Shown: positions 11,551 through 57,263 of the stretch, piece by piece
How positions within the stretch are numbered: the first letter of the stretch is position 1
Layout: each line of letters opens with the position of its first letter
NCBI GenBank assembly: GCA_030704615.1
Contig: CM060732.1
Coordinates: forward strand, 78,120,001 to 78,184,000
Reading direction: 5' to 3'
DNA from: Takakia lepidozioides
Lineage: Eukaryota > Plantae > Bryophyta
Length of the DNA: 64,000 nucleotides
The notes under the pieces: generated by a model
Told to the model about the DNA's origin: nothing
Database searches by the model: none
Seen by the model: the letters and a program-made list of their open reading frames with translations, nothing else
Program-made: the position numbers and the translations under genes

Positions 11551-11951
11551 GCGATTTTCTCTAGGCATCTCAAGAATATTTTTTGTATTTTTTCATGTTG
11601 TGAGTATCCTAAGTGCACGCTACCCAACCTCTCTTCAGGGACCAGAGTTTCGCACTGCAAACGCATATCTCAATATGTATAATTGTTAGGGGAGAGGGTT
11701 TCGCTCTGCAAAAATATACATGGGTAGGGCCTTTGAAAGTGACATATTCATCATTTCAGCTACAATGTGATTTCTTTTCAGGCTGGTTGGTACAGAGTTT
11801 CGCCGTGCAAAATTATCCATGGGTGATGATTTTAAATTTAATGTTAGGCCTCAACGCCCACTCTCATGTCTGTTATAAAAAGGGCATGATATCGTGTGAA
11901 CATAACATGGAAAAACCACACTTATAGGGTAACATGTTCATCAGGTATAGG

Positions 11952-12565
11952 TGTTACGGACATAGCCTAGAAGATACCAGGAGTAAATACCAGAAGTTAT
12001 CAAGTTACTATGTTACTGGAAGTTACTATGACTTACCGTGATTTACCATGATCTACCACTACTTACCAAGTTACCGGGAGTTTACCAGATTACCAAGAGT
12101 AACTTGGGAAACTACTCAGGAAGCTTCCTTTGGAATAAACTTCTCCATCAAGATACCTCATTTGTTTAAGGAAGCTTCTCCATCAAGAAACCTTTGTTTA
12201 ATCTTGGAAACTTCTCCAGCAAGTAAGCTTCCTTGAATAACTTCTCCCAGTATAAGGAATCCATAGGAGGCAGAGATCTCCTAGGGACACTCTTCAGTCT
12301 TCAGCCCAACACAGTTCATGCTACTCTTGTTTCCGGTTCCAGTACTCTAGCCCAGTTTCCAGTATCTGGTACTCCAGTCCAGTTTCCAGCATTCCAGTAT
12401 TCAAGTCGTGTTCCAATATCTTGTACTCTTGTTCATTGTTATAAAGATCGTTTTGATTCATATTTACTCATCGTGCATTCGGCCACGCCGACCTTGACTT
12501 CTTGTCTAGCTTTGTACCTCTAGTTTTATGTCTTGTTGTGTTAAGTCATGTTATCGTCCTTGACA
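11952..12565 (+). repeat. 5' LTR of Gypsy element
   Basis: TGTTACGGACATAGCC...CCTTGACA, a direct repeat of 17738-18337. Confidence 0.95.
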
Positions 12566-17737: not shown

Positions 17738-18337
17738 TGTCACGGACATAGCCTAGAAGAACTTACCAGGAATAAATACCAGAAGTTATCAAGTTACCAT
17801 GACTTACCGTGATTTACCATGATCTATCATGATTTACCACTACTTACCAAGTTATCGGGAGTTTACCAAATTACCAAGAGTAACTTGGGAAACTACTTAG
17901 GAATCTTCCTTTGGAAGAAACTTCTCCATCAAGATACTTCCTTTGTTTAAGGAAGCTTCTCCATCAAGAAACCTTTGTTTAATCTTGAAAACTTCTCCAG
18001 CAAGAAATCTCCATAGGGGAAGCTTCTTAGTATCCAGTATATATAAGAGGCGAGACTGGACACTCTTCAGTCTCGCCAACACCAGTTCAAGCTACTCTTG
18101 TTTCCAGTTCCCAGTACTCTAGCCCAGTTTCCAGTATCTGGTATTCCAGTCCAGTTTCCAGCATTCCAGCATTCAAGTTGTGTTCCAATATCTTGTACTC
18201 TTGTTCATTGTTATAAAGATCGTCTTGATTCCTATTTACTCATCGTGCATTCGGCCACGCCGACCTTGACTTCTTGTCTAGCTTTGTACCTCTAGTTTTA
18301 TCTCTTGTTGTGTTAAGTCATGTTATCGTTCTTGACA
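17738..18337 (+). repeat. 3' LTR of Gypsy element
   Basis: TGTCACGGACATAGCC...CTTGACA, with a TATA-like TATATATAAG at ~18038-18047. Confidence 0.95.
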
Positions 18338-26000: not shown

Positions 26001-29000
26001 GAGAGAAGCAGAGAGAGACTTACTCGGGAGCAAGATAGCCTAAAGTGCCGACGACATGTGTTGTGGTGGCTTCCCCCTCTCCTCTCTGTTCCACTAACTT
26101 TGCCAATCCAAAATCTGCTATCTGAGGAAATCACGAAATGTTACAGAGAAAGAAAGAAGGAAACAAAGAGATTTTATAACATCCATGGGAAGCTCAAAGA
26201 GATTATGGTCCACAGGAGCCCATTGACAAGGTAGAACAAATCAGGGAATATCTCAGAGTACACCATTGACTGACATTGACCAGATCCAATTTAAAGCATC
26301 TGCAAAATACATAGAAGTATACTTGATAACGTCCACAGGTCCCCTGAGGATCCATGGGAGATGGCAAATAGCACGAAACTACTTCGAAAACATAAAATGT
26401 CACCCCAGGACAAAGTGTGTCATGCAGGTAAGCTGCCAGATACTTCAGGTCTTCAAAGCTGGAGGCCTTTTCAAAGACTGGGAGTCTCTGAAGACAGAGA
26501 AACAAGGAAAGAAAGTAGGGCATGGGGGCCATGGGACAAAGTAGACAAACATCTAGCTACTTTGAAACCCTAGGTTTGATATTGCTAACATGATATAGCC
26601 AATACCATTGACTGGCTGGATACCCTTGTGAAGCCCTTGTAAGGCTCTAAAAATTGCAGTCTCCAGCTACCATCGGGCTCATGCATATCCAAACAGGTAA
26701 GAGAAAGCAGTGATTTCCTCACACCTTAGCGCGGAAGTAGCCATCAAGCAAAATGTTGGATGTTTTCACATCACGGTGCACATAGTGGGTCTTGGTGTGC
26801 TCATGGATATATTCCAGACCCCGCGCTGAATCCAGTGCTATTTGCACTCTAGCATTCCATGAAAGGGGAGTAAACCCTGTCATGGGAGAAAAACGAACAC
26901 AGAGGACATTCAAGACATCCACTGGAAGTTGTAAGTGCTTATGGACAAATATACTGAGCGAAGACAAGGAAAACAACGAAAGAGGGGAAGAAGCTGGTTG
27001 CACCCACGCAGGTAGGACATTGCCTAAGAACTAAATCCTGCTTAGTCACTAGGCTGCCAGACACTCAGGACGACACTGTGTCACCAGAGCATTCAGACAT
27101 ACATCCAGTTCTCTTTTTTCCTTGGGCTTCCTGTGTTAAGCTTCTTTCTTTCATTTCATTTCTTGCCTTCTCTGTATGAGGCACTTCCTCTTAGTACTAG
27201 GCTGCCAGACACTCAGGACGACACTGTGTCACTGGAGCATTCAGACATACATCCAGTTCTCTTTTTTCCTTGGGCTTCCTGTGTTAAGCTTCTTTCTTTC
27301 ATTTCATTTCTTGCCTTCTCTGTATGAGGCACTTCCTCTTCGTCGACTTTTGGAATCTTAATATGTGGTTGTCTTGTCATTCTACGAAGATCCATCATCC
27401 ATCAGGATGCCCTGGACGATTCAGCTTTCTGTGCTCAAAGAGAGCATGTCATGTGCTCTCGAACAGCTAATGTGCCTGTTCAGAGCGAGTTTGGCATACT
27501 GTCCTTAAAGCTCTCAACTGAGTTCAAGGTCAGATGGTGGGGTCAGTTGAATCACATGCCTAATACTGTCTTCCCTGAGATGATCAACTCTTCTTGGAAG
27601 CAATACTGTTCTGTTGAACAGGCATAGTCCTGGTGGAAAAGGGTCAAGGAGATTTTCAAGTACCTATCTATTAGGCAGGAAGAACTGACCCTGCTAGATG
27701 GAACTGAATTGGAGGCTGAATTGTCTAAGACCAGCACAAAGAATGTCCAAACATAAAATTTCCCTAATGGGTAAGGACTTTAAGGATGATCTGAAGGGCC
27801 CACCCTCGGCACTAGACTGAAATTTAGACTGAGGGGGGGAGAATAAAGGAGAGGGAAGGGAGATTGCCAATGCCCAATGTGCGAGCAGCCTGAAGACAAT
27901 ATCCACTTTCTGATATAATGTCTGGGGTATCCTCATCAGGGCGACCCTCTTCAGGACCATCAAGAACATAGTCCCTGCACCTCTGTTCACCAACTTCCAA
28001 AATCTCAAGGCTGAACCTAAAGCCCTGGCCCTGTTGGGGTCTAGTTGCTGGGCAGCTCACACACGGCAGATTTTGCTTGTGTCAAGAGCTTCGAGAGGAA
28101 ATCTGGAAAGCCCGAACTAATTGTTTATATCAAGGTAAGTTCCACTACTGGAGTCAGCCCCTCGCAAAGACTGGGCATGGGTCAGGCTACAGCAAACATC
28201 ATCTAATGAGTCTCTTGGCAGACATGATAAAGTTCTTTCTTTCTTCTTTCCTGCCACACCCCTGCAATATAGGCTGTAAATGCACATTTACCTTTGGAAA
28301 CTGGATCATGAAGGCGGTCACTCACAGCTCGGTTCTCTGCATACTCGTACACTAAGAAAAGTTCGTCCTCACTCGCAGAATAGCCTATCAACTCTACCTG
28401 CACACAAGAGACCCAGAATTGTAGAACCAGATCATGACCTAGAAGTATGTGAATTTGACAGGATGAAAACTGTGTGACCTTTGTGCCCCTGCGACTGGAA
28501 GAAGAGATGTACTTGTTGACCACCCTATGATTTTTTTGTCTATGACGTACCCTTCAGGGTTTATCCATTATTGGCATATAGTAAGGTTTCCACTTGGCCA
28601 CAACTGCTACAGCCCTTGCCTACAGCAACCCACTTACAGGGTTCATTGACTGTTGATTTAGGGGTAGGCTTGAATAACATTTTCAGCAGAGCAAAGTAGA
28701 GTCCAGGCTAACATTCAAGTATAAGAGAACAAGAAGACCATATCCAAATGTAAAGAAAGAAGCTGTCAAGAGAGCAAAGATAGAGAAAATATGAGACTAC
28801 CTGGAATTTTAAAATCTAGTATCGATCTCTGTACTACAGAGGAACTATGGCCACAAGGCTATGGCAAACACCTTATGAGTACATTCTGTATGTACAATAG
28901 AGTTGGCAAAAAGAGTTGGAATCTCAAAGACCATGTTCAATATGAAAACCTGTAAGTGAGTTTTTAAGCCATAAATCAGGTAGGTCATCAGGCCAGAGGG

Positions 29001-32000: not shown

Positions 32001-33017
32001 GTAGCTGCGACACAAACTATCTGAATGGAACCTGCATTTGCTAGTCACAACATGTTTCCTACTTTGACTATTAACCGCAAAGATGTTTTTTAGGGGGAAG
32101 AAGAGTGCACCTTGTGTTGTGCGTGAAGTGATAGCTGGGGTGGCTATTATTGATCCATTGTTGGAGAAACCCAAAACTGGAGGAGAATAAAACCATAGGA
32201 TGAGCACATATCCCTCTCTCCAATTACTCTGTACTTTCTGTTGGTGCTCAAAGGGGCCAAAAAACCATCACTTCTTTCAGTACATCCAAATACAGCTTTA
32301 GATAGACAGGCCAATCAAAAAGAGCCCTCCAAGCAGACAGGAAGTACACTCACCTTGTGAACTCAATGGGATGTAGTATAGTTGCTTGTTAGCAAGATTG
32401 TTTGTATGGCTGATGTTGTTGAGTGCCATGAATTCAGTCTCATTGATCGATTCAAACCGTTTTGACAGGCGGGTGAAGCTGTCTGAATCTTGAAGAAAAT
32501 AGCTCAAGACAGATATGTCGGCATTCATGGAGCACCCACACAAGAGATCGATGACAATATGTTGGCCTATGATCAATTGAGTATCCTGGTCTGAAGATGG
32601 TTGCCATGCTAAGCCCTGGTAACTGCCAGTTGTGACAATACCGTGGGTGGCATTTTGTGCCTCCACAGTATACTGGGAAACTGCAAAATAGTGGGGGCTA
32701 TTTGTAACACCGGATGTGCAAGCGCAGTTCACTTCTACAAACATAGATGTCTGACCAGCAGGGGCTGTAACGAAAGGATGCAATGGGGACTCCACATTCA
32801 CATTGTGAGGGTCTACACCAAACAGCCCAGAAATAGTTGACAAGGACTCATTGTCAGATAGGTAGTGTAAAAACGCTTTGCACGAAGCCCTGTTGCCTTG
32901 GCAACTAAGAGGAGTGTTCAACGCCCACCTTGCTGGCGCATTCACCAGCGAAAGAAAGAGGACAAACAGAAGGGGGGGGCGGGGCAGGGGAGGCCGAAAC
33001 AGCGAAGGGCATTCCAT
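23087..33017 (-). CDS. LYK3: LysM-domain receptor-like kinase, LYK3-type (active kinase motifs)
   Basis: Exons 33017-32354, 32176-32111 (probable), 31722-31450, 30481-30327, 29371-29282, 28397-28292, 26876-26725, 26121-26024, 25098-24954, 24133-24029, 23251-23087. Signal peptide, CxC spacers (CAC, CGC) between LysM-like repeats, a TM helix, kinase motifs [30 protein letters not shown], and the LYK3-like C-terminus [20 protein letters not shown]. Confidence 0.93.
25160..25960 (-). mobile_element. Degenerate non-LTR retroelement 3' remnant in a LYK3 intron
   Basis: Minus-strand [12 protein letters not shown] resembles the C-terminal R..SH.L.E.GR / zinc-finger region of RTE/RTEX-like LINEs. It is heavily decayed and the boundaries are approximate. 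Confidence 0.35.
27041..27340. repeat. Near-perfect tandem duplication, 148-bp unit x2
   Basis: ACTAGGCTGCCAGACACTCAGG... occurs at 27048 and 27196, and both copies end ...GAGGCACTTCCTCTT. Confidence 0.92.
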
Positions 33018-34660
33018 TGCAGCAGCCCAGCTGCAGCTATGTTTGAATTCTCACTCTAATCTCAGTCGCTTCCTCACTCACAAATACGCCCCTCTCCGCT
33101 TCAACCTGCCAACACTGCGCATTTCAGTTTGTCTGTCGCCTCCCTCTTTATTTCGCATCTGGGTGAGCCCACCAATCCGAGCCTGTAGAGCTCTCTTGCC
33201 CAAGCTACCATATTCCAAAACATATATGTTTGCAAGATAAACAATACAGGGGTGAAGCAAAAGTAGGTGAAATTTCAGTTTTTCACCGGCCCTCAGATAT
33301 ACATTTGAAGAAAAGAGGCTAACACGATCTTAAACTTCTGAACGTAGGCCTCTCAATCTTCTGAGGCACTCATCGAAGTAAAATGTGGATAGGACATAAA
33401 TCCTATACTCCCCTGTCTGTCCTTTGCTCTCGTACAGAACTTGAACCTAAAAATCCCGAAGTAAAATCACACTGATACTCCCGGGATAAGTCCAAGCCGC
33501 TTTCCCAGACAACCATGTGATCTTCGTTGTGGACAGATTGATTTTGAGCTGGTGAATTGCCGTCAATTTCAGCCCTTTGTCTGGTTGCTGCCAAGATCCA
33601 ACCCAGCTCCATCATCTCAGCCATCCCCGCTGCTGCCAATGAAACATCCAGCTCCAGAAGCTTGGGGAAAACTCTCAAGCATTGACATACAAGCAGGGCC
33701 CAGCTGCTGAAGCCATGGCTCTGATTTGAGCGCGAACCCGAGCGAGCAGATCAACACTGCGCTAGAAACTCGGCAAAGAAAGAGGAGGAGAATGACTAGC
33801 AGCCCTGTACGTACATACACTGTATCTATACCGTATTGTACTCCCTTATTCATCCATCCTCCCATCATTATTGATCCATCGCCGTCTTCATTCCTTCCCT
33901 GTTAGAGGGAACGATGAAGGCATATTCCTCTTGCACATATTCCTGGACCAAGATCAGAACTATTCCTGGTTGTCCTGGAGAGCTGAGAGATGGTGGTGTC
34001 TATGTTACAGGCAAGAGGAGGGAGAGATGGTGGAGTCTATGTTCCTGGGGGCACGGGATAGAACAAGAGGTTGATGAAAGGGCACAGTTAAGAATGAAAA
34101 GACAAGATCAGTGAAAGGGCACAATTAGTGATGAAAAGATATGATCTGTGAAAGGGTGTGATCACATGTTAAGCAAAAGGTTATAAATGTTGAGGAGAGA
34201 AAAGAGAAGGTTGCAGTTTCGACAAGCAAAACCCACCATCACCGAGCCATCACCCAGCTGGGGGAGGTGAAGAGAGTACCTGAGATAACAAAGGAGAGCG
34301 GAGGAGCTGCATGACAGCGTACACATACAGTGATGTAATGGATTACGAGATGAGTACAGTGAAAACTCTTAAAGGGAAACTAGTATTCGGTTGAATGAAT
34401 GTCTGAAGTCATTAGTGATGACGATTAACACTTGTGTGGAGTTGCATTTTCTTCCAGGGGCCCAAGCGAAGAAGATCATACTGATGTCATCTCTTTCACT
34501 GCAGATGCTAACACCTGCTGCACTAGCGCCAAACCAAGTAGTAATTACAAAATGGGTCACCTCTTAAGGATCTCACTGCGAGTTACTTATTACCGGTAGC
34601 TGGGATGTCTGTTAGCGATATAGAAGAATAATATGAGATAATACATTCCATAGAATAATA

Positions 34661-37600
34661 ATGTCGTCATATATCACGCCAGATTTGTCGACACTGTCTA
34701 AAGCACAGATCCGACAAAAAATCTCGGATGTAGGAAGGCAAATTGATGCAGAATTCAGTGGTGATCTTTCGCTCATAGCAGCGTCCCCGGAGGTGAATGA
34801 AGCAATGTTGAAAATCATGTGCGTTTGCCAGTATGATGGGAGGAAAAAAGAAAATAGAAAGAAAGTTGGAGGAAAGTGTATGTATGATTGCCATTGCAGT
34901 AAGAATCAAAGAACTTGCAGCCAAAGTTGCTCTTGTCATGGAATCTGCATATACAACACCTTTGTACAGCTTCCAAAGCTTGAGATTGTGAGCCATCCAA
35001 ATTTAGGAAGAGAAGTTGTGACCACAGAATATCTTGAACCGTCCAGGGTAACTCATATTTTCACTGGACGTGTCTTGAATGAAGCTGATCATGAGAGGGA
35101 AGACGCGCAACTGGCTCCAGGCAGCGCAAGATATGTAATCACCGGGCAGTGGGCAGGCAGACCAGAGTTGGTTGGCGATCCTGGTCCGAAGTTCTGTGTG
35201 GATCCAAAGCAGAGCGATGGGAAGGTAACAATCGGAGGGTTGCTGAATCACAGCTGCGCTTACAATGTTGAAGTGATTGAACTGTGAGGGCCCAACCCAG
35301 TCAGTCATAGTACAAGACTGTGTTTTTCCATTTTTTTCTTTTCTATGGGAAGGAAAAAATAAATTAATACATTATAATTATAATCAGAATTATAAAAGAA
35401 TAAGGTTTCTACGAAAAAATCATTGCTAAGAAAAAATTCCACATTTATCAACTTTCTCTGGTAGTGTCATATTATCAATCCTCAGTTCCAATTCATGACC
35501 TTCAAGTGTGCAGTGAAGCAACATATTTGATCCAATTTCTTGTTATAGTTTCTAAAACATTTGTTTTAAAAAAACAAGACCTTCTTTTTACTTAAATTAA
35601 ATTAAAATCAAATTAAACATTTTTAAATTAATGGCTGTGCCTAGTCACACAGTAGCCTTTTTTTCTTTTTTTCCGGAATAAGTCATAAAATTTATGGCAT
35701 GGCACAAGGGAAAAATAACCTTGCGAAACAGCTTACAACAGAGTAGCTTGAAAGTCACAGAGACTGGATCTGAAATATATTAACATAGCCAACCCAATTT
35801 TTGAGAAAGAGGCACTCCATTCTTGCGGCATGCATTTTGTTGTTTTATAGTTTAATGTATGTTTTTTCTTAGATTCTGTTTCCCCAAGGAAACCCAAGCC
35901 ACAGCCACTGGGCCTTGAGGGGGGAAATTCCCCTTTTGAGGACAGAGCCCAAAGGGCAGCACAGGGGATTGAACCCCAGACGCGTGTATTTTTAAATGAC
36001 TAGCATGGGTTCTTAACACTATGTAAGAACGCGATCATTATATATATCTCTAATTTTCTTTTAATAAATCTAAACCTAAATTTTGAAAAATAATAAATAT
36101 CTTTGCCTTTCATCTTTCCTGACCTTTCGGTTTGGTGGCTAGGCCCCTAGCATGGTCTTTTCTGGGGGTTTTAACTTTTTTTCCCTCCTTCTTAATAAAA
36201 CTTTTCATTTCCCCAGAAATATAATAATAAAATGTAGTAATCTAATATAGAATAATATATTTCTAGAATCGATATTAAAAACCAGAATAAATCCATGTCA
36301 CACTCTACTCATACTTGCTAGTAAGCCCCAAAATATGATGTTCTAAAATTATATTTTACCGGATGAATTTCAGGTGGCAAAACAAGAGGATATATATGGT
36401 TGGAAAATCTCTGTCCCATCTTCATATTAAGAGCGGGACTCCGCTCACTTTTCATTATGTGTAATAACCGCACCACATTTTCATTCATGACCATTTAAAT
36501 CTCAAAAATTAGTTAGAACAACTGTCATATCCCATATTACATTTCAGTATGTCTTTCTTACTTAAGCTTGGGCAAACCTTTGGTTAGAGTCTGAGTCTCT
36601 TCTCTTAGTCTAACCTCCTCCTTTCAGTAGTCTGCAGCACTTCTTATCATCAAGGGGCTACTCACTTGGGCAACAATTCCTTGACATTGTAGAGGTCCAG
36701 CTCCACACAAAGCATACATCTGCAGAGTTGTCGTCCTGCTTGCATGTCCAACTGAAACATCGCACCTTCAATGAGAATTAGTGTGTGATGTACTGATTCC
36801 ATTTCGTTCCATATTTGAAGTGAGTTGAGTAGGTGAGGAGGGTCACTAACCAAGATCTATATTTAAGTAATACCATGACCAGTGGACATGTCAGTAATAT
36901 CATGATCAGAGATAAAAACTAAATCTCATTGAAGGTGCAATGTTTCAGTTGGACATGCGGCGAGAACGATAATGATTTTGCGGAGCTATGCTTGTGTGGA
37001 GCTGATCCTGTAATATGTCAAGGAATTGTTGCCGAATTGGGTAGCCCATTGATGAGAAAAAGTATTGAACACTGGTCTAAGGAGGAGGTTAGACTTAGAA
37101 CAGAGATTGTGACTCTGAGTGAACGTTTGACCAAGCTTAAACACAGCAATAATAGAGATGAATCAAAGATTAAGGAGCTGGAAGATGATCTTCAAAAGCA
37201 AATTGAAAGAAAAGATTTTGTTGCAAACAAAGTAAGCCAAGCGAAGCGTGACAATGCAGCTCATCTTCAAAAGGCAAGTAATGATCAAGAAGCAGGACCT
37301 TCTTCGCAGGGTCACAAGGATAGTGACGACACCGCAGTAGTAGGAGTCCCAATGGATGAAGTAGGTTTGCTTCAGGCAGGACTACACACAAAATCAAGGA
37401 GCAAATCCCCTCCAAACAAGAGTCCCAGGCTTGAAAAACCAAAAGAAAGTTCCGTTCGTAGAGGCAGTGGTAGTGAAATAAAACATGGTCACGCAACAAG
37501 GTCTGCAAGTAGGATGAAGATACAGCAATTAGGATCAGAACGGGCTGGGCCTGCTAGAGCTACTGGTACAGATTCTCCCATGCGGGAAAACTCGCCCAAA

Positions 37601-38218
37601 AGACAGCAAAGAGTAAGTTTTGGACACGTTGGCAGAACGTCCCCTAGAAGCGATAATATGCCAAGTGGAAATGTATCAACAAGTAGCACTGCTGGAACCC
37701 GCAGCCCAAAGCGTAAAAACAGTCCTAACAAAGTTCCAGAACACGCTAAAGATTGGGAGGCAGGGCTACTAACAGAGGATGAAATCAAACATATCTTCAG
37801 TTGGATCGAGGGAGTTGAGCACCCAAGAGGTGATTCAAGAACTGTCACAGCTTGGCCTGAAGCTAAAACCTGGGCATTTTGGTTGCATACAACTTTCAAG
37901 CGTCCAACAGCTGAACAGGCAAGAACTTGGCCAGATGAGTGGTCAGGTGTACACTCCTACACACTTCGAAGAGCAGATTCAAACGAAGCTATCACAAACA
38001 TGCTTCACCCTCTTCGTTTTGAACTTCTAGCCATACTGTTAGACCTTTTGACATTTCCTGAACCTGCACGTAAGTTGTCTCGTGGAAGTTTTGTTAAAGA
38101 TAGGGAAGGCACAATGTGGTGTCTTGTTTGGGCCCATACTAACGACCTTCCACACGAGCTTCATATCGAAGAAGCATGGGCACAATCAAGTGGAGGTCAA
38201 CGCAGTATGCGTTTATAA
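34661..38218 (+). CDS. Divergent SET-domain protein (AWS-like - SET - post-SET - coiled coil - disordered - Trp-rich unknown domain), 659 aa
   Basis: Exons 34661-35283, 36374-36460, 36949-38218 (GT-AG, 1980 nt, in frame). Cys-rich AWS-like CVC...CMYDCHC...CSQSCSCHGIC, then LLNHSC. The spliced junctions read IELWQNKRIY...IKSGTPLTFHYVW (ELTFDY equivalent), then post-SET CLCGADPVICQG. The start codon is uncertain. Confidence 0.78.
35875..36030 (-). mobile_element. tRNA-derived SINE-like remnant in SET intron 1
   Basis: Minus strand has an A-box-like TAGTGTTAAG and a B-box GGTTCAATCC at tRNA-like spacing, but no cloverleaf. Confidence 0.4.
36562..37140. repeat. Long imperfect inverted repeat (arms 36562-36782 and 36918-37140, ~135-nt loop)
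   Basis: 36742-36776 is the reverse complement of 36924-36958 with one mismatch in 35 nt. Further complementary blocks are CAGCTCCACACAA/TTGTGTGGAGCTG, GGCAACAATTCCTTGACAT/ATGTCAAGGAATTGTTGCC, AGTCTAACCTCCTCCTT/AAGGAGGAGGTTAGACT and TTAAGCTTGG/CCAAGCTTAA. Confidence 0.93.
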
Positions 38219-38250
38219 ACAAACAATACTATTGCTGGTTCGTAACCTGT

Positions 38251-38468
38251 CAGTAGCTGGGTTGGATAGAGCACTGAGTACTACCCAGGTGATTCTTGGT
38301 TCAAATCCTGCTACCTTGTCAGGTGTGGTATTTATCTTCTCTTGGTTGGTGGTGTCCCATGGGTTGGGTTGTTTTCTCCTCTCACTAGGTACAATTAAGG
38401 GGTCTGATATGTGGGCGGCTCCAGGGTGTGATTCCCCTTTCTATAAGAGAAATACAATAAAAACTAAA
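38251..38468 (+). mobile_element. tRNA-derived SINE-like element
   Basis: A-box-like TAGCTGGGTTGG, B-box GGTTCAAATCC and an A-rich 3' tail. Confidence 0.5.
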
Positions 38469-39445
38469 GTTTGTACTCGTGGGGTGAATATAAAAAATCA
38501 CTTATGAGTCAATCAAACAATTTATCTTCTCACTGAATCAAATTCACATAATTTGCAGCACTCAAAATAAAATATAGATCAATTGAAAATGTAGGATTCT
38601 TAACATTCTTAATTCACAAATAATTATCATAAAGCTAACATAAGGGTATACATCCGGGTCCCGAAATTCTGCCACATCAGGTTATGTATTTGGATAATAC
38701 CCCATGGGTATTTCAGAGTAATAAACTCACCGGCTAACTCCTACAACTTTTTTTTGTTTTTTTTTTTTTTGTTTGAAAGGGAAACACCTGGGAGCGACAG
38801 CTCACAAATCCTGAGGAGTCAATGAAAACTGAGCAGGGAATAAAACAATACAGAATGTGAGAAAGATTTAAAGATATGAGGAATGAGGAAGGCTGGAAAC
38901 TGCCTTGTACATAACTTTACTAGGTAGTCATTGGTCCATGTTGTTGAGGGAAATGACAATGAAGGATGGTGGTTATGCACCCTCAAAGGCAAATACAAAG
39001 AAAAGAAGAAGAAGAAGAAGAAGAAGAGTGCAAAGACTAAGTAAAAGTGAAGTGAAGTGCATGTAGTGAGCTACATTGGTGTTTGGCAGCTTCATGTGGG
39101 CAGGAGACGGTAACGGTTCCAAGGCTTCCCAAGAAGACCCATCTGTTCGTTTGCCATCATTTGGAGGTTTTCCCACACGATTCTTGTTGGAGATTTGAGC
39201 ACTTACCTTCAAGAAAGCAGCAATAAGAGGGGATCTGATGTAATTGTCTCCCAAGAACCAAGAAGCTGAGAAAGAGACAGAGGACAGGACAGTTAGAACA
39301 AAGAAAGACGTTGTTGGGGACATCTTCTCGCAGCTCACAGTTTGAGCAAACTCTCGCCTTATTGACGACCTCCCACAGGGAGTGTACAAATGTCCAGCTG
39401 AATTTTAGCTAGAAACAGTGGGGGGGACAGAGAGTGTTCACTGCA

Positions 39446-42400
39446 ATGAAGGAGCCGAGGAGATTGAGATCATGGGTTGGTGGATGGGACGTAATCTTTG
39501 GGGTGTTGATAGTACAGCTGACAGTAGTGAGTATGGCTATGGGAACCCAGACTGAGAAACAGGTATCATCGGCTGTGTATATTGTGCGCTTGAAGGGGCC
39601 CCCGGTTACTGCCTATGAGGGTTCTGTGGAAGGTCTTGCTGCAACGGCTCAGAAGGAAGGGGGGAAATTACTCCAGAGTTCCAGGTCTCTTCGCAAATAC
39701 CCAACCTCAGACTGCAAACTCTGATCTCAGCCTCTTGTGGCCTTCATATTTTACTTCTTCTTCTTCTTCTCTCGGTAAGCTGATCTTCAAAGAGCTTCCC
39801 ACACGGGATCGACGTTACAAAGTTCCTTTCTTTCTTTCTCTCCGGGCTTGTTTTGCTAGAATTATTGCTCGAGACTGTGCTTTACCTCGTGCGACACTTC
39901 GAGAAACGTGGTGGTTTCTTATATACGCAAACACTTCCACGACTTGGTTTTCTCGTCTTTGTAGTACAGTGGCCTCCAACGAACGTAACCAATTGCTTTC
40001 TGCTTTTGTTATCCCTCTCTTGTGTCATGTAATCATAGACACGATATGTACATCTATCTCTTCTCTCACTCAGGACTTCCACAGTAAATGAGAGCATGAT
40101 GAAAATAAAGGCGTCTAGCTCAAGAGAATTTCGATCCCTGTGTCACCTTGACTTAAGTAGTCTGGCACTGTCTGTGGTGTCTGTGAAGGCAAGCAGTGGA
40201 AGCATATGCGGACTACTTGAGGCAAGCTCACGACAGCGTGTTGGAAGAAGTGATGGAGATAGGCAGCTATGAGAAGCTCTACAGCTACACTGTTGTCCTC
40301 AATGGCTTCGCGGTCAAACTGATCAATTGCGCTAAGCAGGTTTTATCAAACCCACCTTGTTCAAATCTGCCCCTGCCAGTCTACAAAGACCTCTATGCTG
40401 TGAACAATTGGTAAAAATGTGCTCAAAACTGAAGTGCTCAAAACTGAAGATCTTGGCTTCAGTATTGCATTGGGAAGCACTTGCAAATGGTTCTGGCCAA
40501 GTTGAAAAGCCAGGGGTGCTTAAAATCATTGACGCCGGTATCAGCTGAGGGATAAATTGTTGACCAACCCTTAAGTACAGGGCCCAGATGGATAAGACCT
40601 TTTTTTGCTCGTAATGTCTACCTAAAGCTGTGACAAATGATGCAGGCAGAACTACTGGATGCGCACCCACTAGTGATATCAACTGAGCCAGACACACTTT
40701 TTCAAAAGGAAACAACCCACACCCCTAATTTCTTAGGCCTTCCTGCTGGGCCATGGGCGATAAATGGGGGACCTGAATATGCTGGAGAGGGTATTGTGAT
40801 TGGAATGCTTGACACAGGCATTGATCCAACACATCCAAGCTTTACGAAAGAGACTTGGAATCGGCCCTACGGTCCATTGCAGAAATGGAAGGGAGAGTGT
40901 GTTGTCTCAGAGACATTTCCTCTGGGTTCATGCAATGGAAAGATTATTGGTGCACAGTATTTTGACAAAGGGATCATTGCAGCCAACCTGTTCAATGCAA
41001 CCTATGACTTTGACTCAGCTCTGGATGGAGATGGACATGGCACGTAAGTGAAGACAGAACCTCAACTACTCTGTTTTTTAGCCACATATCTTCTGAGAGG
41101 TCACGCAGACAAACCTCAGATAGCCTTTATTTTTTGGACATGCAAAGAGATGTAGTGCTGGCTAATCACACCATGTGAATCAATCAATGATTTGGGTCTT
41201 TTGGCTTTAATTCATGAGGAACAGGCACACAAGCTCAATTGCAGCTGGGAGCAGCAGGATCCCTGTGATTGTCAAGGGATACAACTATGGCCATGCAAGT
41301 GGGATGGCTCCTCGAGCTAGGTAAACATCCAGAACCTGCCTCTACAGGTCAGTCAATTGACTGGGAGTTTAGCATCCTCAGACGGTTTCCTTATACCTTT
41401 GCTTCCCTCCCCAACCTACTCCTAGGATGACATTCTAGCCATAACAAATATTCTCGCCAACTTTGTAGAAACTGTAAAGATTGACGACAAATACCAGGAA
41501 ACAGGACAGGACCTGTAGAAAGGAAAGAGACAGGCCTTGAAAATGAGTTCGCCTTTTCAGTAGCAGATCTCCTAGGTTCTCCAATGCCTTTCAACTACTG
41601 GTACCTGAGCTTGCTCCTTCAATACCCAGAAAGCTGTCTCATGTGAATATTCCGTACAGGGTAGGCATACAGACTATGATGTGGACTGCAACTAGCTGCG
41701 AAAATTCAGAAAGCATGAACGGGGGGAGGGAGGGGGTGCAGGATAGCAGTATACAAAGTGGTCTTCCGTGATGGTGGCTTCCTCTCTGATGTGCTTGCTG
41801 GCATTGATAAGGTCACTACCCCCTTACCCTCCTTCTCTATTGCACCCTTTTTCTTGCTCTCTGTAGGTCAGTGGCCAGCCACAGAAGCTGTGTACACGTA
41901 TATAGCTAGTTTGTTTGTTTGTTTCTCCCTCCCAGCTCTTCAAGCATCTTTGTCTGTATGATCAGTCACTGCATATGATTGGCCAGTGTTTTCAATCTTC
42001 GTGGCCATCTTCTCTTTCTCCTTCTTTGCCCCAGCATGGCATATTAGTCCATCACTCCTCCAACTGAGGAACTACGAACTCATCAATAAGATCCTCATCC
42101 GTGTAGGCAGTACAAGATGGAGTGGACATTCTCAGCATCTCACTGGGTTCAATCAGCAGCGGTACGGGTGTGCCCTGTCTCAATACCTTCGACGTGGCGC
42201 TTCTCTTTGCCGTCAAGGCAGGCATTACAGTTGTGCACGCAGCTGGAAACAATGGGCCATATCCACAGACTATGAAGTCGTTTGGGCCCTGGATTATTTC
42301 AGTTGCGGCAGGTCTCAATGATAGGTCGTATCCAAACTCCATTATTCTGAGAGACAACGAACAATTTCCAGGATCTGGGCTTTCAGGTGTGCATCCTCTC

Positions 42401-44893
42401 TTTCTCTCATTGTCACACACCCAGATATATCCTGTATCCCAGCTTACAAAGGACCTCATCTACAAAATTATGAATTTCTAGGGGATGTCATTTGCATCGT
42501 TTTTTGGCTTCTTGATTCCTGGAAGATCAATCTGTTCGCATCCGTGGCCAGAGAATTCAGGGATGCTAGTTCCACCTTCTTCTCTGTCTTGACTCCCGCC
42601 TCCCTTTCCCACTCAGGCGTTATGTCTGCTCCAACATCAGTCAGGCTCCTTGCAAACCAAGACAACTAATTCTCTCTCTCCCTCTCCGTGTGTTGCTGAA
42701 TTGCAGTCGGAACTCCAGGAGAAGTGTGGCATCCTCTTATCTATTCAGAAGATGCATTCAGTGATTCTACCACCAGTCTCGATTTCGAGTACTTTTCTTA
42801 TTGTCAGGATTCCAGTCCCTTCAATGCAACATTGATCAAAAACAAAATTTTGATTTGCAACTACATTGACTATGGATCGGGTGACTCTATAAACCAGTTT
42901 CAAAACGCTATTGCGACAGCTATGAACATGAGCGCTGCTGGTCTTCTCATTATGAGCAAAGCTTCGGAGGTGAATTTGAAGGAGAAGCCAATAATTCTGG
43001 ATCCATTTCCCTTCCCACTTCCTGGGGTTTTTGTTTCAGATTCCAACGTTTCCAGAGTGAGTTTAACTTCCATTCAGCTAAACATATTTGAAGTCAACGC
43101 TCAACCAAGAGTTTCACTGGTTCTTCGCAGAGGGGGAAGGGAAAGAAAGACAAAAACTTTATAACGTCCATGGGAAGTTCTACGAACGAACTTATGGGAC
43201 ATAGAGTAAATAAGAAACTGGGGCCCTCAACAGGAGAGAAAGAGAAACAGCGAGCCTGCCCAGTGGGACAGGACAAGAGATTGTTGTAAAGTCCTTCGTG
43301 TTTGACAGTATCTTGTTATAATGCACAGAGTATTCTTCGATACTACTATTCAAGGGCGAAAAGAGACAACACGGGCAAGATAACTGAGTTTGGAGCTCGC
43401 GTGAGGTTGAATGATTCTCGACAAGCTTCTTTTGTGACAGAAGCCCCACAAGTCGCACTTTTCTCATCAAGGGGACCAGTCTATGCGAATACCATCAATA
43501 TGGTAATGGCAGACTTGTTGAAGCCCGATCTAGTGGCTCCAGGAAACCAGATATGGGGTGCCTGGACACCTACCGGCATTGATGCCACAGGATATAGTGG
43601 TAGGTAAACTCCTCTCCTCCTCCCATTCCGTAGAGTAGATCAGTGTGTCTGCGTGCCTCCACATCCCATGTCTTGCCCCATAAGCTCTTTTGGCCTGATG
43701 GGCACTTTACAAAGCCCTTCTTTCTTCCTGGTTGGTGGCTGGTTGTCGGAGGCCCCACTTTTCTTCTTGTCTGCTTTCCTTTGCCCCATAGTTTTCTTGA
43801 GCTTCCCTTTTCCCCGGAATCGAAACGAATTCTGTACAATACATACTCCTGAAATAGCTTCGCTGGCTCCAGAACTGGTCTTTCACTCTGTTTGCTGTAA
43901 ATCTTGTACCGTCGCAGAAGCCACAGTGTATTTGTGTACTACGTATATGTGTTGCATGCGCAGGGGAAAGTTTTGCGATGCTGTCAGGAACAAGCATGGC
44001 CACCCCTCACATTGCCGGCATTGTCGCCCTCCTCCAACAACAGCATCCACATTGGAGCCCTGCTGCTATCCAGTCTGCCCTTCTAACCACGGCAAGCCCA
44101 TTTGACTCCTGGCACGCACCCATCCTTGCAGAGCAACCTTCGCAAAATCCCGCATCAACGATGTTGGGATCTGCCTCACCATTTGATCTTGGAAGCGGGG
44201 CAGTCAATGCCACTGCTGCCTTCAATCCAGGGCTGGTGTTTGAAAGAAGTAAGTCTTTCTCTGGCCCAGTGGAAGAGAGAGAGAGAATTTGAAGGGAGCG
44301 TGGGAGGAGAAGAGGACTCATGGTCTAGCTTTCAGCTTAGAGCAAAGTCACGAGGTAGGATATACACGAGAGAACGAGGGCATCTGGTAATTAGTGAAAA
44401 CCCTCTCTGCCTGCATTGACATTGGATGCATGGATCAATGCCAGGTTTCCAAGACTATGTCAACTTCCTCTGCACTCTTCCCGGCCTTGACGCAAACACA
44501 GTGGAGGATGCCACCGGTGTCTCATGCCAAGTACCCGTCGGCGAGAGAGCATCTAACCTGAACATGCCATCAATCACCGTGGCAAATCTGATAGGGACAC
44601 GAGTAGTAAACCGAACAGTAACCAGCTATTACAGTGAGGACGAATCATACGCAGTAATCATAAACCCACCTTCAGGAGTTGATGTTATGGTGGAGCCCGG
44701 CACATTCACCATCAGCTCACAAGAGGCTGTGACTCTCACTGTAACTTTGCGGGCTGTAGCTAACAACCAGGCTTTTACTTTTGGGTCTCTAGCTTTGGTG
44801 GGAAGCAAAGGGCATGTTGTGCGCATGCCTCTTTCGGTATCTGCAAACTCAGACGTAGATATTCATGAACAAGAGAGGGAGCATGCTCACTAG
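39446..44893 (+). CDS. Subtilisin-like serine protease, SBT2 subfamily
   Basis: Exons 39446-39684, 40189-40339, 40646-41043, 41225-41320, 41742-41811, 42107-42386, 42707-43056, 43329-43599, 43964-44248, 44445-44893. Signal peptide, I9 prodomain (YIVRL, LYSY..NGFAV), TTHTP maturation site, triad DTG / HGTH / [10 protein letters not shown] and Fn3-like domains. Confidence 0.94.
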
Positions 44894-46450
44894 ACCTTGA
44901 CAGCTTGGTGCGATGCTTCATAAAGAAAGAGAGATCTGGGTGTACAATCCTTTTTGAAGTTAAGACTTCACTTGAAACAAACTGTCTACATCTTCCACAA
45001 GTCATTAGATGGAAGGCAGGCATGATGATTGTGCATTGACCACAACTCCAACTCTGATCCCTTTGGAATTGAGTGCAAAGGTGTCTCATTCCATCCCTCC
45101 CAAATTACCCTGCAACTGCAAAATATATGTTGTCACAACCACTCCTACCTCTCCTGTTTCTGTCAACAAACCAGCATACTTAAGGTGACTATCCAGATGC
45201 AAGCATCTGCACCTCTCTTTTCCGCGCATTGGGATGTTCAAGGTGGGCTCACATAGACTGAGGATGAGACTGGCAGATGGGATATCTAAGCTGCAGCGTC
45301 CCGAACAGTACATTTGTCCTGCTCGCCCCATACTATGTGCATTAATGGAGGGAAAATACAAGCACAAGGAGCATGAAGGTCTTACACAAGCTTCCAGGAC
45401 GGGTAAACAGTGAAGAGGTTCAGTTCCGCTCACAGGTTCCCCGGAATTGAGAACCCTGGCCCCAGATATTTTGTTAAACGAATGGCTGAGTAAGGCAAGT
45501 TCTGCCAATGCCTTGGGAACATCTGGAATGTGACATTCCATCCTATTCCTGGGGCATTGAGGAATATGTGAAATGGGATTTTCTGGACAGGACGGTACTC
45601 AAATTTGCAAATAAAATCTTCAGCTAGAGATTGTACTCATAAGACGTTGTTTGCCGTAGCCTTGTGGCCTCTTCAGCTAGAGAGTATGCATTTGAGAGTA
45701 TGGTAATAGTGTTTCCATTATAACAGCCTGGGACATACAATGGCATAACCAGATAGACTGAGCAGCAGTTCATGAACAAGCCATTCTAGACGAGGGAAGA
45801 ATCTCTAATGTCCAGAAGGCATATCCTACGATATCACTTGACTAGCTAAGTTGAGGCAGAGCAAATAGCTTAAGTAATGCTTGACCTTACAAATGGGATG
45901 CTGGTGGCTGTGGAACCTGACATTGGAGTCCCACACTCACAAAATGCACCAATTCTAAGTGTTTCTTCAGAAGGTGAAATCCCCCAGTGAAACGACAATT
46001 TTATTTCTATTCCTGCCCAAATAGAACAGAGCACATGACTTCCCACAATGCCATCCCTTCCTATCATTCAAGCGAAGGAAAGTGTGACCAAATGCAAGGA
46101 CTTCCCAACCAAGAAGCTAGACACACAGCACGGCCTCTCTTTGCGAGCTCATTAACATAGAAGACTATTTGACAAGAAGGTATCTTGTGGGCCGCTGTAA
46201 AGAACTTCCCTTAACACCTCATTTGATGTACACCCTCCAGACTCCCACAGAGATTTGGGCCAATTGCCCATTCGCGCTATCTGCAAGTAAATCACTTCAT
46301 ACTGCATAGCAGCCTGACTGGTTCCGTGTGATGATACTAGGGCAGAATCCTGCACATTGCTACATTCATATACATGTTGTTACTCATGAGTGTGTGTGCC
46401 GGTGTTAGTGAGGGAGAGAAGAGCTCTCACAAGGGTGACAGTCCACTGAT

Positions 46451-50259: not shown

Positions 50260-51300
50260 ACAAATTTTAAATGGCATACTTGTCTAGGACCTATCAGCGG
50301 GTATGTAGACATACTGGCAAAGTTTAAAAAAAAGATAAAATCATTTGGATGACAAACGGTTGGTTCCACCTTTGAATCGATTATGAATGATCCCATACTT
50401 GTCCAGGACTTGTTAGAGGGTATGTAGAACATACTGGCAAAGTTTAAAAAGAGGATAAAATCATTTGGAGGGCAAACGGTTGGTTCCACCTTTGAATCGA
50501 TTTTGATTGATCCCATACTTGTCCATGACTTGTCAGAGGGTATGTATAACACTTTCCAAGTTTGAATATAAGAAGATAAAATCATTTGAATGTGGAACGT
50601 TGCGGTCCACATTTGAAGCAATTTTGATATGGCCCATACTTATCCAGGATCTATGAGAGGGTATGCAGAATATACTGGCCAAGTTTGAAAAGAAGATAAA
50701 ATCGTTAGAATGAAGAACGGATGGTTCCAACTTTGAATCAATTTCCATTGATCCCATACTTGTCTAGGACCTGTCAGAGGGTATGTAGAACATACTGGCA
50801 AAGTTTGAAAAGAAGATAAAATCATTTAAATGGGAAATGGTTAGTTCCATCTTTCAATCAATTTTGATTGAGTCCATACTTATCCAAGACTTGTTAGAGG
50901 GTATGTAGAACATATTTGTCAAGTTTGATAACAAGATAAAATCATTTGGGTGGGCATCAATTTGTTCACCCTTTGAATCAATTTTAATTGATCGCATACT
51001 TGTGCAAGACCCGTCGGAGGGTATGTAGAACATATTGGCCAAGTTTGAAAAGAAGAAAAACCGTTTAAATGAAGATTGGTTCGTTCCACCTGTGAATCAG
51101 TTTGTTTGATCTCATATTTGTCCATAATCTGTCAAAGTTTAAAAAGAACATACCAGCAAAGTTTGAAAAGAAAATAAAAGCATTTAAATAGGGAACGTTT
51201 TGTTCCATCATTTAATTAATTTTGATTTATGTCATATTTATACAACATATGTCAGATGGTATGTAGAGCATACTGGAAAAGTTTGAAAACAAGCATGAAG
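50260..51300. repeat. Tandem repeat array, ~120-bp unit, ~9 copies
   Basis: CATACTTGTCCAGGAC...AGAGGGTATGTAGAACATACTGGCAAAGTTT...GATAAAATCATTT recurs near 50275, 50394, 50514, 50635, 50755, 50875, 50995, 51113, 51232. Confidence 0.92.
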
Positions 51301-51842
51301 GAAAGAGGGAGGCAAGAGGAGAATGAATTGAAGATTTGGTTCTTAACTGATATGCAGCTGATGGCCATTTCATGTTGGTGGTGGCTGATACAAAATTCAC
51401 AATATGGCAGTCTCGGAGGACCTAATGTTATTGGCATGGGAATAGCAAAAAGATTTGTACAGGCAACAACATCATCAAGCACCTTACAATAAATAAATTT
51501 GTTGAGATTGTTTTTTAGAGTTCCAAACGAAAAAGCACTCCAACTAGAGAGATCCCATTAGAGTAATACATTTTACCACAAGTGATTTGACGTGCTTGTA
51601 AACGTGGTTCAAATTTTGATATGTTGTCATAATATCGTGTACATGTAATTGTAAGGTCTTGATAATGATAATGGTAAGATAATACTAATTATAAGTCTTA
51701 TAAATCTTATAGTAAAACTTATAAATCTCATAGATCTTATAGTAAAACTACAAGATCTCATAATATTACTAAGAAACCAAGAAGAAATCGACATTTGTCA
51801 GATACATATAGGACATCTATTTTTTCTTATACTAATGATACC

Positions 51843-52251
51843 TATTGGAGGTAGCTTCAATACACTGTAACATCAACCAAGTTTTGACTTGGTACACGCA
51901 TCCATAATACACGTAGCTCATATGCATAAGGCTTCTTTGCATTAATGGAAATTAGGAACGACGTCCTTATAGTCCTAAGGCTAGGACAGGCTAACATTCC
52001 CTGTCAGGCTACAGAGGTACTTCTTGCTCTACTCTCAGGCGACAGAGTACTAGCTCAGATAGTAAGATGAGAGTATTGTTCCTCTATATGTACTTCCTGC
52101 CCGTTGGGCGGGAAGGTGATTACATGATTAGAGATTATGTTGTCTCTTGGTTTTGAACTAGCAAGTTGGCCCATCGACGTGGAACACTAGGGGCATGGCA
52201 CTCTATCTTGTACCTAGCTAAGTAAGTGGCAATGATAGTTTTCTTCTTACA
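51843..52251 (-). repeat. 3' LTR of Copia element
   Basis: Direct repeat of 56851-57263, with termini TG...TA on the element strand. Confidence 0.95.
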
Positions 52252-54435: not shown

Positions 54436-56850
54436 TTTAAGAGATGAGGTTGTAACAGAAAGAAATGACCATATTTTTGTCGAGTGTAATCATACCCTGC
54501 CTTGCACATTAAAAGTGACTCTTCATCAAACAAAACATCTCTGCTCTCTGTGATGTGTTGAGTGTCATTGTTCCAAATCCTGTAGGCTTTGCTTGTTGTG
54601 CTGTAGCCCATGAAGATGCCTTTCTTCGCTTTGGCATCTAATTTCTTCCTGACTTGCTGTGGGACATGCACGTACGCATCTGCTCCAAAGATACGCATGT
54701 GTCCAACGGATGGGCGTTTCTTGTGCCATAGCTTAAAAGGGGTAGCATCTTGTGTCATGCTATTGCCTATGCGGTTAAGCGTGTAGACTGTGGTGCATAC
54801 GGCCTCTCCCCAGAACCTGAGGTGCACATCGGTGGAGTACAACATGCTGCGATCTGCTTCAAAAACTGTCATGTTCTCCCTTTCAGCAGGACCGTTCTGC
54901 TCGGGAGTGTACGCGCAGGTGAGGTCTGGTTCGATGGAATTCGCTTCTAGGAACTTCTGAAACTTGTTCCCGGTGAATTCTCTGCCACGATCAGAGCGAA
55001 GCTTGTGTAACTTCTGCCATGTTTCACGTTCCATCAATGCTGCATACTTCCTCAAACAAGACAATACATCAGACTTCTTCTTGATGATAAACACCACTCT
55101 ATAGGCAGAGTGATCGTCCTTAAAAAGAACGTAGTATAACGCCCCTGCTATTTGTCGCGACGGACATGGGGCCACACAAATCGGTGTGTACAAGATCTCC
55201 AACCTTTGCTGAGCGTTGGTGATCTGGGTTCGTGTGGAAGGGGTTTCGGTGAATCTTTCCAAAAGCACACCCTGGACAGAAGGAGGGGTGTCCTGTGCTT
55301 AGGATCAACCCGTCAACCATGCCTGTAGACGCCATCCTCCTGATCGTTGCATGGTTGATGTGGCACATGCGGTGGTGCCAGACATCAAGGCTCCGAGTGC
55401 TTGCCTTCTTCGTCTCACTTCCGAAAGAGTTCGCAATGTAGGCGGCGGTGTTCGGAATGACTGTCTGGACTTGGAGCTTGTACATAGTTCCCTCCATCAC
55501 ACCTTCGATTAGGGTCTCTCCTCCTTGCACAAGCCTGCATCCTTTCTTGGAATGCACGGTCTCTATGTTGAGTAGAGCAACCTTCTAGATGGAGAAAAGA
55601 TTTCTTCCGATTCCCGGGACGTGCAAGACACCTCGCAAGATTGCTGGTTCCCATTTGGTCCCATTGTAAGTGCGAATATTAATGTCACCAACTCCATATA
55701 CAAGAAATTGGGTGGCACCAATACCTTCCACCATGCGACGCTGCGAGGTGATGTCTTGGTACTTGGTGAACCAAAAACGCTTGTCGGTCATGTGGTCCGT
55801 GTAGCCGCTGTCTGCAATCCATGAATCTCCGCCAATGCGAAATTTGTCTTCTGCTGCGACGTACGCACGGTGAGTCTTCTTGACGGTTGCAGTGCTTGCG
55901 GTAGGCTTGGTATCAGACTTCTTGGGCTCAACGCACTCACGAGCTCAGTGCCCAAGCTTGCCGCACTTCCAACATTCGGAATTTTGCTTCTTTTCTTCAA
56001 TCTCCTTCTTGCGTTGCTGCCTCTGTGCGTAGGTGAGAGTTGATCGCTCCTTGCCCTTAGCGTTGGCAACATATGCCGCGGACGGAGCGCGCTGCTGCTC
56101 TCGTTCTTGAGCTTCCTTCATCCGCATTTCTTCTCGTACTAAGCGGATCAGAAGGTTGTTCAAGGTACGATCGGCAGCTGCTGTTCTATCCCACGAGGAG
56201 TGAAAATGGCTGTAGGCATCTGGCAAATTTCCTAAGACTTTGGCGATGACATTGGTGTCGCCAATGCTGTTGTCATCGAGATGAATAAGCTGACTCTTTA
56301 GAAGCTCGACTTTGCTAATGAAAGAGGCTATTGTATCGCTACTCTCGAACTTGGCTTGATAAAACTTGACCTGAACATCATGGATGTTGTCGTTAGCTCT
56401 TTGATCATGTATCGTTCTGAGCTTGTCCCAAATCTCTTTGGATGTAACGCACCCACAGACAAGATCAAGCATCGACTCGTCGAGAGCGGCACAAAGCAAA
56501 GATATCCCCTGTCCATCTTTCTTTACCCATTCCTCTAGCTCTGCAACTTGTGCTACCGGGGGTTTGGCGACTGTGCCATCCAACGACCCCCATGAGCTCT
56601 TTTCCCAAGAAAAGAGCACACATCTGAAAACTCCACAAGTGGAAGTTCTGACCATTGAACCGTTTGATTGTGGTGGTGTCCCGCTGCGACTCCATAGCTA
56701 CAGTACAGTACTATTGACACGACTTTGCAAGAAAAGTTAACACGCACGGCCAACAACATTAAAAGCAACTAGAAAACAAGCTATGACACACTTCCTGGAC
56801 CACTCTGACGCAGCTTTGTGAAAAGAAACTGTAGGAGTGGGCCCATAACC

Positions 56851-57263
56851 TATTGGAGGTAGCTTCAATACACTATAACATCAACCAAGTTTTGACTCAC
56901 TTGGTACACGCATCCATAATACACACAGCTCATATGCACAAGGCTTCTTTGCATTAATGGAAATTAGGAACGACGTCCTTACAGTCCTAAGACTAGGACA
57001 TGCTAACATTCCCTGTCAGGCTATAGAGGTACTTCTTGCTCTACTCTCAGGCGACAGAGTACTAGCTCAGATAGTAAGATGAGAGTACTGTTCCCCCATA
57101 TGTACTTCCGGCCCGTTGGGCGGGAAGGTGATTACATGATTGGAGATTATGTTGTCTCTTGGTTTTGAACTAGCAAGCTGGCCCATCGACGTGGAACACT
57201 AGGGGCATGGCACTCTACCTCGTACCTAGCTAAGTAACTGGCAATGATAGTTTTCTTCTTACA
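56851..57263 (-). repeat. 5' LTR of Copia element
   Basis: Followed on the element strand directly by PBS GGTTATGGGCCCA. Confidence 0.95.

Follow-up and report, generated by a model that had tools for sequence, protein, structure and literature searches.

A probably tolerated, lineage-specific inverted duplication across the intron 2-exon 3 border of a SET-domain gene in Takakia lepidozioides, with latent hairpin potential

The window analysed here is a stretch of 64,000 nucleotides (nt) from the bryophyte Takakia lepidozioides (GenBank assembly GCA_030704615.1, contig CM060732.1, forward-strand positions 78,120,001 to 78,184,000), from whose first letter all coordinates are counted. It holds a putative SET-domain gene whose second intron contains an inverted, diverged copy of its own 3′ end and of the start of the following exon. 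This arrangement had been proposed in an earlier reading of the letters alone (the sequence-only reading), and a repeat search and a gapped alignment now confirm it. The gene occupies 34661-38218 on the plus strand and consists of three exons, which were translated and searched singly and whose pieces fit in frame. Exon 1 (34661-35284) encodes a Cys-rich AWS-like region and the first two thirds of the SET domain, ends right after an NHSC motif and is supported by an open reading frame (ORF) and by homologues at 33-39% identity; its donor GT stands at 35285. Intron 1 (35285-36373; 33% GC), which carries a high-copy repeat resembling a short interspersed nuclear element (SINE), separates it from exon 2 (36374-36460), which encodes the end of the SET domain and closes in ...TFHY with the conserved Tyr. 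Intron 2 (36461-36948) is a GT...AG intron of phase 2 and 488 nt, ancient and enlarged by the inverted copy. Exon 3 (36949-38218) encodes a post-SET motif, a coiled-coil-like and low-complexity middle region and a conserved C-terminal part of ~140 amino acids, followed by the stop codon. Over the three exons, all on the plus strand, ~660 codons are uninterrupted, and the GT/AG sites are intact.

The repeat consists of two collinear inverted pairs, 36562-36710 / 36992-37140 (149 nt, 79% identity) and 36728-36782 / 36918-36972 (55 nt, 85%), and a search with a 14-nt seed found no other inverted repeat of at least 40 nt in the window. Gapped alignment merges the pairs across indels of 3 nt and 1 nt into arms at about 36562-36802 / 36902-37140, with 189 matches and 8 gap columns in 244 columns, 5 small indels and an identity of about 77-80%. 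The left arm (36562-36797, minus strand) is a reverse-complement pseudo-copy of the end of intron 2 and the start of exon 3. The right arm (36905-37140, plus strand) is its source. It runs from the last ~44-45 nt of intron 2, which carry the polypyrimidine tract and the AG (36947-36948), through the first 192 nt of exon 3. A loop of about 107 nt (36798-36904, plus strand) lies between them, or 135 nt when the ungapped arms alone are counted. The best-paired block (36924-36958, plus strand) sits over the 3′ splice site and matches its partner at 36742-36776 in 34 of 35 positions. As claimed before, it has one mismatch (36939/36761) and covers 25 intronic nt, the AG among them, and 10 exonic nt. 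The accompanying claim that the intronic part is matched better than the coding part holds for the ungapped core only (29/31 vs 147/189, p 0.051) and is lost over the full arms (42/51 vs 147/193, p 0.45). Perfect runs between the arms measure 19, 19, 17, 15 and 13 bp, of which a 19-bp run (37015-37033) and the 17-bp run (37079-37095) are exonic; the longest run is unremarkable (p 0.32).

Inverted duplications are a known artefact class of long-read assemblies, and a chimeric or fold-back read could in principle have produced this one. Among the sequencing runs that we found, four are DNA from a single sample, one is a plant metagenome and some small ones are guessed to be RNA. In the DNA contigs, a short-read k-mer contig, probably from the same sample as the assembly, spans 34400-38312 with no difference and with even depth, and the two arms, besides their indels, are mismatched at more than 20% of positions. 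Arm divergence and the concordant short-read contig together exclude such an artefact, to which we assign a practically negligible probability. Both arms are single-copy in the same contigs, with a depth of 55.5 throughout and no other match at 85% identity or above. Terminal repeats of a miniature inverted-repeat transposable element were also considered as a source of the arms and rejected, on the grounds that the right arm belongs to a conserved coding exon and that both arms are present in a single copy. Overlapping 6-nt palindromes, AAGCTT and CTTAAG, lie at the outer end of the duplication (36561-36571 and 37131-37140), and we speculate that they are a plausible template-switch point. 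Another DNA contig of the source sample (depth ~66) covers part of the loop at ~36793-36854 and lacks 1 nt at 36837; it may stem from the other allele or from a short stretch of similar sequence at another place in the genome.

By homology, the host gene is a bryophyte AWS-SET-postSET-like gene related to the SETD2/ASH1L class. Exon 1 alone falls below the Pfam SET cut-off (13.7 vs 22.4 bits, E 0.086), and a single-sequence search of PDB with it gave nothing useful, so that a family profile was required. An exhaustive phmmer search of 1.84 billion representatives recovered a small family at 33-39% identity, the best match to exon 1 reaching 39%. This family includes annotated 'SET domain-containing' proteins of 376-378 amino acids from several Sphagnum species, and the homologous Sphagnum protein does score as Pfam SET (39.1 bits, E 1e-9). 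The family profile matches the AWS-SET region of SETD2, ASH1L and NSD proteins in PDB at an E value of about 3e-5. Within the family alignment, N196, H197 and C199 of the NHSC motif are invariant, and the terminal ...FHY of exon 2 aligns with the ...LDY / ...YDY of relatives, the usual Asp before the catalytic Tyr being replaced by His in the host gene. Alignment with the Sphagnum protein continues over the exon 2 / exon 3 junction. Downstream of it, three post-SET cysteines are present (36989-37018) in a non-canonical spacing, C-x-C-x6-C, rather than the canonical C-x-C-x4-C zinc motif that is seen in Sphagnum and in two further relatives, the contigs L001 and L008. The left arm has the x6 spacing at the corresponding place as well, so the change in spacing predates the duplication.

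For exon 3, a set of 5.8 billion proteins returned zero matches. BLASTP against the downstream ORF of L001 recovered both its post-SET region (3e-10) and its C-terminal domain of ~140 amino acids (7e-17). L001 belongs to a group of metagenome and Logan contigs (L001-L006) that are the closest relatives, with 39% identity in exon 1. In this group the gene adjoins a poly(A)-binding-protein-like gene (RRM, MLLE), and its exon 3 is much longer, at about 650 amino acids, yet retains the C-terminal domain, which is without a Pfam family. A close relative was sought by a metagenome protein scan, in which none was confirmed, and by scanning metagenomes for a 32-nt pattern taken from the splice-site block, which yielded none.

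Comparison with these relatives separates the age of the intron from that of the repeat. The Sphagnum gene (L007) has three exons, with an exon 2 of equal size that closes in the same Tyr and an intron 2 of 192 nt placed after the second base of the codon following it; both codon and phase match those of Takakia. When exon 2 and the beginning of exon 3 were used as tblastn queries, L001 and L008 proved to have both exons, separated by introns of ~320 nt and ~375 nt; exon 2 matched with E values of 7e-4 and 2e-5, respectively. Intron 2 is thus ancestral, because it is located at the matching place in L007, L001 and L008. An earlier idea that the intron was born with the insertion has been withdrawn, as tblastn places exon 2 and the intron in L001 and L008; the ORF of L001 happens to traverse its intron. 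No inverted repeat of at least 18-20 nt linking intron 2 and exon 3 was found in L007, L001-L003 or L008, all of them distant at 33-39% amino acid identity. The sequence-only reading had proposed checking orthologues and paralogs for the repeat and for compensatory changes, and the relatives lend it no backing: the repeat is absent from intron 2 of Sphagnum and of two bryophyte-like relatives, and no covariation is demonstrable. Since the intron is shared and the repeat is absent in relatives, the repeat is best explained as a lineage-specific insertion of ~240 nt. Without the left arm, intron 2 would measure about 240 nt, inside the range of the relatives.

The two arms also differ in ways that point to the direction of copying. 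The right arm is the original and the left arm the copy, because the right arm encodes the conserved post-SET stretch, and its protein matches Sphagnum and L001 across the copied stretch. The left arm has an exon-like GC content of 0.45 inside an intron of 0.31-0.38, and its reverse complement contains one stop and two frame-breaking indels within 64 codons. Relative to the left arm and to all relatives, the right arm has one extra codon (a GAT/AAT repeat, 36966-36975), an in-frame insertion that post-dates the duplication. In the His-Tyr motif of the relatives, a different residue is altered in each arm, which indicates that both arms have evolved since the event. Exonic divergence amounts to 42/189 (Jukes-Cantor distance 0.26), and the duplication is old. 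Mismatches are spread evenly over codon positions (16/14/12), and adjacent mismatch pairs, by a hand count, number 13 vs about 9 expected, which is not notable as a sign of error-prone synthesis. The ratio of transitions to transversions is 19:28 in the arms vs 42:22 in two long terminal repeat (LTR) pairs of the window (Fisher p 0.012), a weak indication that methylation-driven C-to-T decay has left no trace in the arms. These LTR-like direct repeats (11969-12565 / 17758-18337 and 51840-52186 / 56848-57198) lie ~5.0-5.8 kb apart, are 89-98% identical and have large ORFs between them; they are probably LTR retrotransposons.

If the insertion had crippled the gene, the locus would now be silent and decaying, and the hairpin would be a pseudogene scar. 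The C-x-C-x6-C spacing, the change of Asp to His before the catalytic Tyr and the lack of RNA contigs over the gene would fit such a course. Two small putative RNA runs, searched over 34400-38400, cover the high-copy repeats at ~35874-36007 and 38250-38332 alone and no part of the gene, which is no proof of silence; the intact ORF hints indirectly at expression, and the plant metagenome run contains a few ~99% identical fragments of exon 3. Against loss of function, the gene has kept ~660 codons open over three exons with intact GT/AG sites, and over the same period the 64-codon copy gained a stop and two indels that break the frame. Conservation can still be recognised in the C-terminal domain, and the unusual cysteine spacing is older than the duplication. 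We regard a pseudogene as very unlikely. That the gene stayed open while the copy decayed suggests instead that it is still under selection and that intron 2 is still removed, from which we infer that the hairpin is tolerated.

The SET gene has host genes on both sides. A LysM-domain receptor-like exon (NFP/LYK LysM1, E 3e-11) lies upstream on the minus strand at 32298-33017, and a subtilase gene with Peptidase_S8 and fn3_6 exons lies downstream on the plus strand at about 39400-44900. An origin of the SET gene as cargo of a CACTA transposon was rejected, given these flanking genes and a three-exon Sphagnum homologue with both introns at matching places. The two short high-copy repeats, one in intron 1 (35874-36007) and one just past the stop codon (38250-38332), reach depths of 500 (that in intron 1) to about 12,000 in the DNA contigs vs 55 for the gene. 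Many contigs of the putative RNA runs contain them too, and the one in intron 1 resembles a tRNA-derived SINE. Tandem arrays are present at 9840-11583, 50311-51270 and 27048-27343, with periods of about 117, 120 and 148 nt.

As the sequence-only reading had anticipated, folding of 36550-37150 predicts a strong hairpin. The sense RNA of this segment reaches -310.1 kcal/mol, as compared with -163 +/- 7 for shuffled sequences (z -20.8). In the predicted minimum free energy structure, 36925-36961, including the AG at 36947-36948, pairs with 36738-36775, so that the polypyrimidine tract and the AG are buried and the splice site is sequestered in a helix. The helix persists in a context of 1.1 kb (36300-37400), where the acceptor is still paired with the left arm. 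The whole foldback spans about 36562-37140, or ~580 nt with arms of ~240 nt, both of which lie within one gene and on one strand. A long inverted repeat that can fold within one transcript, as expected of a hairpin RNA (hpRNA) locus producing small interfering RNAs (siRNAs), is thus present. The compact foldback of a canonical plant microRNA (MIRNA) gene, of about 300 nt or less with one dominant duplex, is not. A scan of 35800-38500 against Rfam at E values up to 1 gave 0 matches, and hence no described MIR family.

Two functions were suggested for this hairpin in the sequence-only reading, and the tests made here lend support to neither. A predicted helix over the acceptor could act as an RNA-structure switch of splicing, in which the left arm, by pairing with the branch-point region, polypyrimidine tract and AG, toggles between a full-length and a retained-intron isoform. 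The latter would stop right past the catalytic Tyr, yielding a truncated protein or a target of nonsense-mediated decay, and the stop invoked earlier for read-through of the donor at 36461 (TAT GTG TAA) is indeed present in the sequence. The acceptor is predicted to lie in a 35-bp near-perfect helix, in the 1.1-kb context as well. The left arm also introduces a GC content like that of an exon, together with several acceptor-like sites such as the one at 36625-36627. However, an early stop arises in almost any retained intron and is nothing special, no alternative structure, ligand or sensor is evident, and the arrangement is not conserved in the relatives. The ORF kept after the insertion also implies that splicing is efficient enough. 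Hairpins that sequester the 3′ but not the 5′ splice site reportedly fail to inhibit intron splicing in a plant, to go by the title of a 1995 paper by Liu et al. (EMBO J 14:377, cited in PMC6581728), which weakens the idea of a switch without refuting it. A switch of this type is, in our judgement, quite unlikely.

The hairpin could also be a source of small RNAs, as an hpRNA locus or proto-MIRNA whose unspliced transcript is diced, so that the gene dampens itself and small RNAs of the left arm pair with exon 3 or with paralogs. Its long imperfect foldback and strongly negative z-score would suit this role, and the perfect runs, in particular the exonic ones of 19 and 17 nt, could in principle guide the targeting of mRNA. 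It is accepted that plant MIRNA genes can originate when a protein-coding gene is duplicated in inverted orientation, and most such genes do not last long (PMC3318440). The siRNA-generating Dicer-like enzymes of plants accept endogenous inverted-repeat fold-back transcripts as generic substrates, and in Arabidopsis the miR838 hairpin in intron 14 of DCL1 offers a precedent in which dicing of the pre-mRNA competes with productive splicing (PMC12825306). Several observations speak against such a source in Takakia. The putative RNA runs have no contigs over the gene, Rfam has no match, and the ~580-nt foldback far exceeds canonical MIRNA hairpins. Small RNAs of the best duplex, which straddles the intron-exon junction, would recognise unspliced RNA only, not the mRNA or paralogs. 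No near-identical paralog is evident as a target, the arms being single-copy at 85% identity or above. The low share of transitions argues against long-term siRNA-directed methylation, and the repeat is absent from relatives. We regard a small-RNA source as unlikely. In a bolder version, the exon-derived hairpin would have evolved as a Dicer substrate, competition between splicing and dicing would set the dose of the SET methyltransferase, and siRNAs of the left arm would act in trans on related SET genes; to this we concede a slim chance.

The explanation that we consider probable is a tolerated, lineage-specific local inverted duplication with latent hairpin potential. Some ~240 nt, comprising the end of intron 2 and the start of exon 3, would have been copied in inverted orientation and inserted about 100 nt upstream, within the same ancient intron; replication template switching or fold-back repair is the likely cause. 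The copy would then have decayed as non-coding DNA, and the gene would have kept its open, homology-supported frame. Provided that the locus is transcribed, folding probably precedes splicing in part of the pre-mRNA. In this folded fraction, splicing may be slowed, or cutting by Dicer-like enzymes may give hairpin siRNAs, in either case as a by-product and not as an evolved device. The pattern of matches fits one neutral and one constrained arm, as the well-matched blocks are those in which the right arm is constrained, namely the acceptor and a conserved C-x-G-I/F-I/V-A motif.

Four points weigh against a neutral duplication, each of them weak or post hoc. Complementarity over ~240 bp has outlasted a divergence of about 0.26 substitutions per site, and indels are few. 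Folding is more stable for the sense strand than for the antisense strand (-310 vs -275 kcal/mol). On the sense strand, mismatches compatible with G:U pairing exceed A.C mismatches by 13 to 6, an excess that is not significant (binomial p 0.17). The best-paired 35 nt fall exactly on the acceptor, with a permutation p of 0.038 for the 34/35 block in a window chosen post hoc. Jointly, these points leave room for a function, and neutrality stands as the default rather than as a demonstration.

As it stands, the locus offers a clean and datable local inverted duplication in an ancient intron, long tolerated. It can serve as a test locus but does not yet attest to a new mechanism. Should the hairpin be active, this would be a natural gene whose functional exon forms one arm of its own silencing trigger. 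It would also capture how a single mutational event can create a small-RNA locus that targets its own gene, or splicing under structural control, and would do so in an early-diverging land plant.

Known systems resemble the Takakia locus in part. Young MIRNA and hairpin loci, as in the model of Allen et al. 2004, likewise show similarity to coding genes far beyond 21 nt and arms that are imperfect and decaying, and most of them are thought to be short-lived and functionless (PMC3318440). They are, however, separate loci, whereas here the functional exon serves as one arm and its neighbouring intron holds the other, in a predicted hairpin with a foldback of ~580 nt. The miR838 hairpin of DCL1 is similar in residing within a protein-coding pre-mRNA whose processing would destroy, and so could dampen, the host transcript; it is short, lies entirely within the intron and yields a small RNA that has been detected, while the hairpin predicted here spans an intron-exon border and is exon-derived. 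With long inverted-repeat siRNA loci such as Arabidopsis IR71, and with intron-spliced hairpin transgenes for RNA interference, the locus shares arms of several hundred bp and a spacer of ~100 nt in one RNA. The arms of those systems are near-perfect, and the spacer of the transgenes is an intron. The Takakia arms share ~78% identity, and one of them would be lost with the spliced intron, so that the mRNA would retain only the other. Editing duplexes of the GluA2 Q/R-site type in animals also join an intronic segment to a complementary neighbouring exon in a duplex that exists only before splicing. Those duplexes are ADAR-dependent, short and conserved, unlike the long, lineage-specific and decaying repeat described here, and to our knowledge plants have no ADAR enzymes. 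Gene-derived hairpins from inverted duplication are thus of a known kind, and what is unusual in Takakia is that a functional exon serves as one arm and the adjacent intron of the same transcript carries the other.

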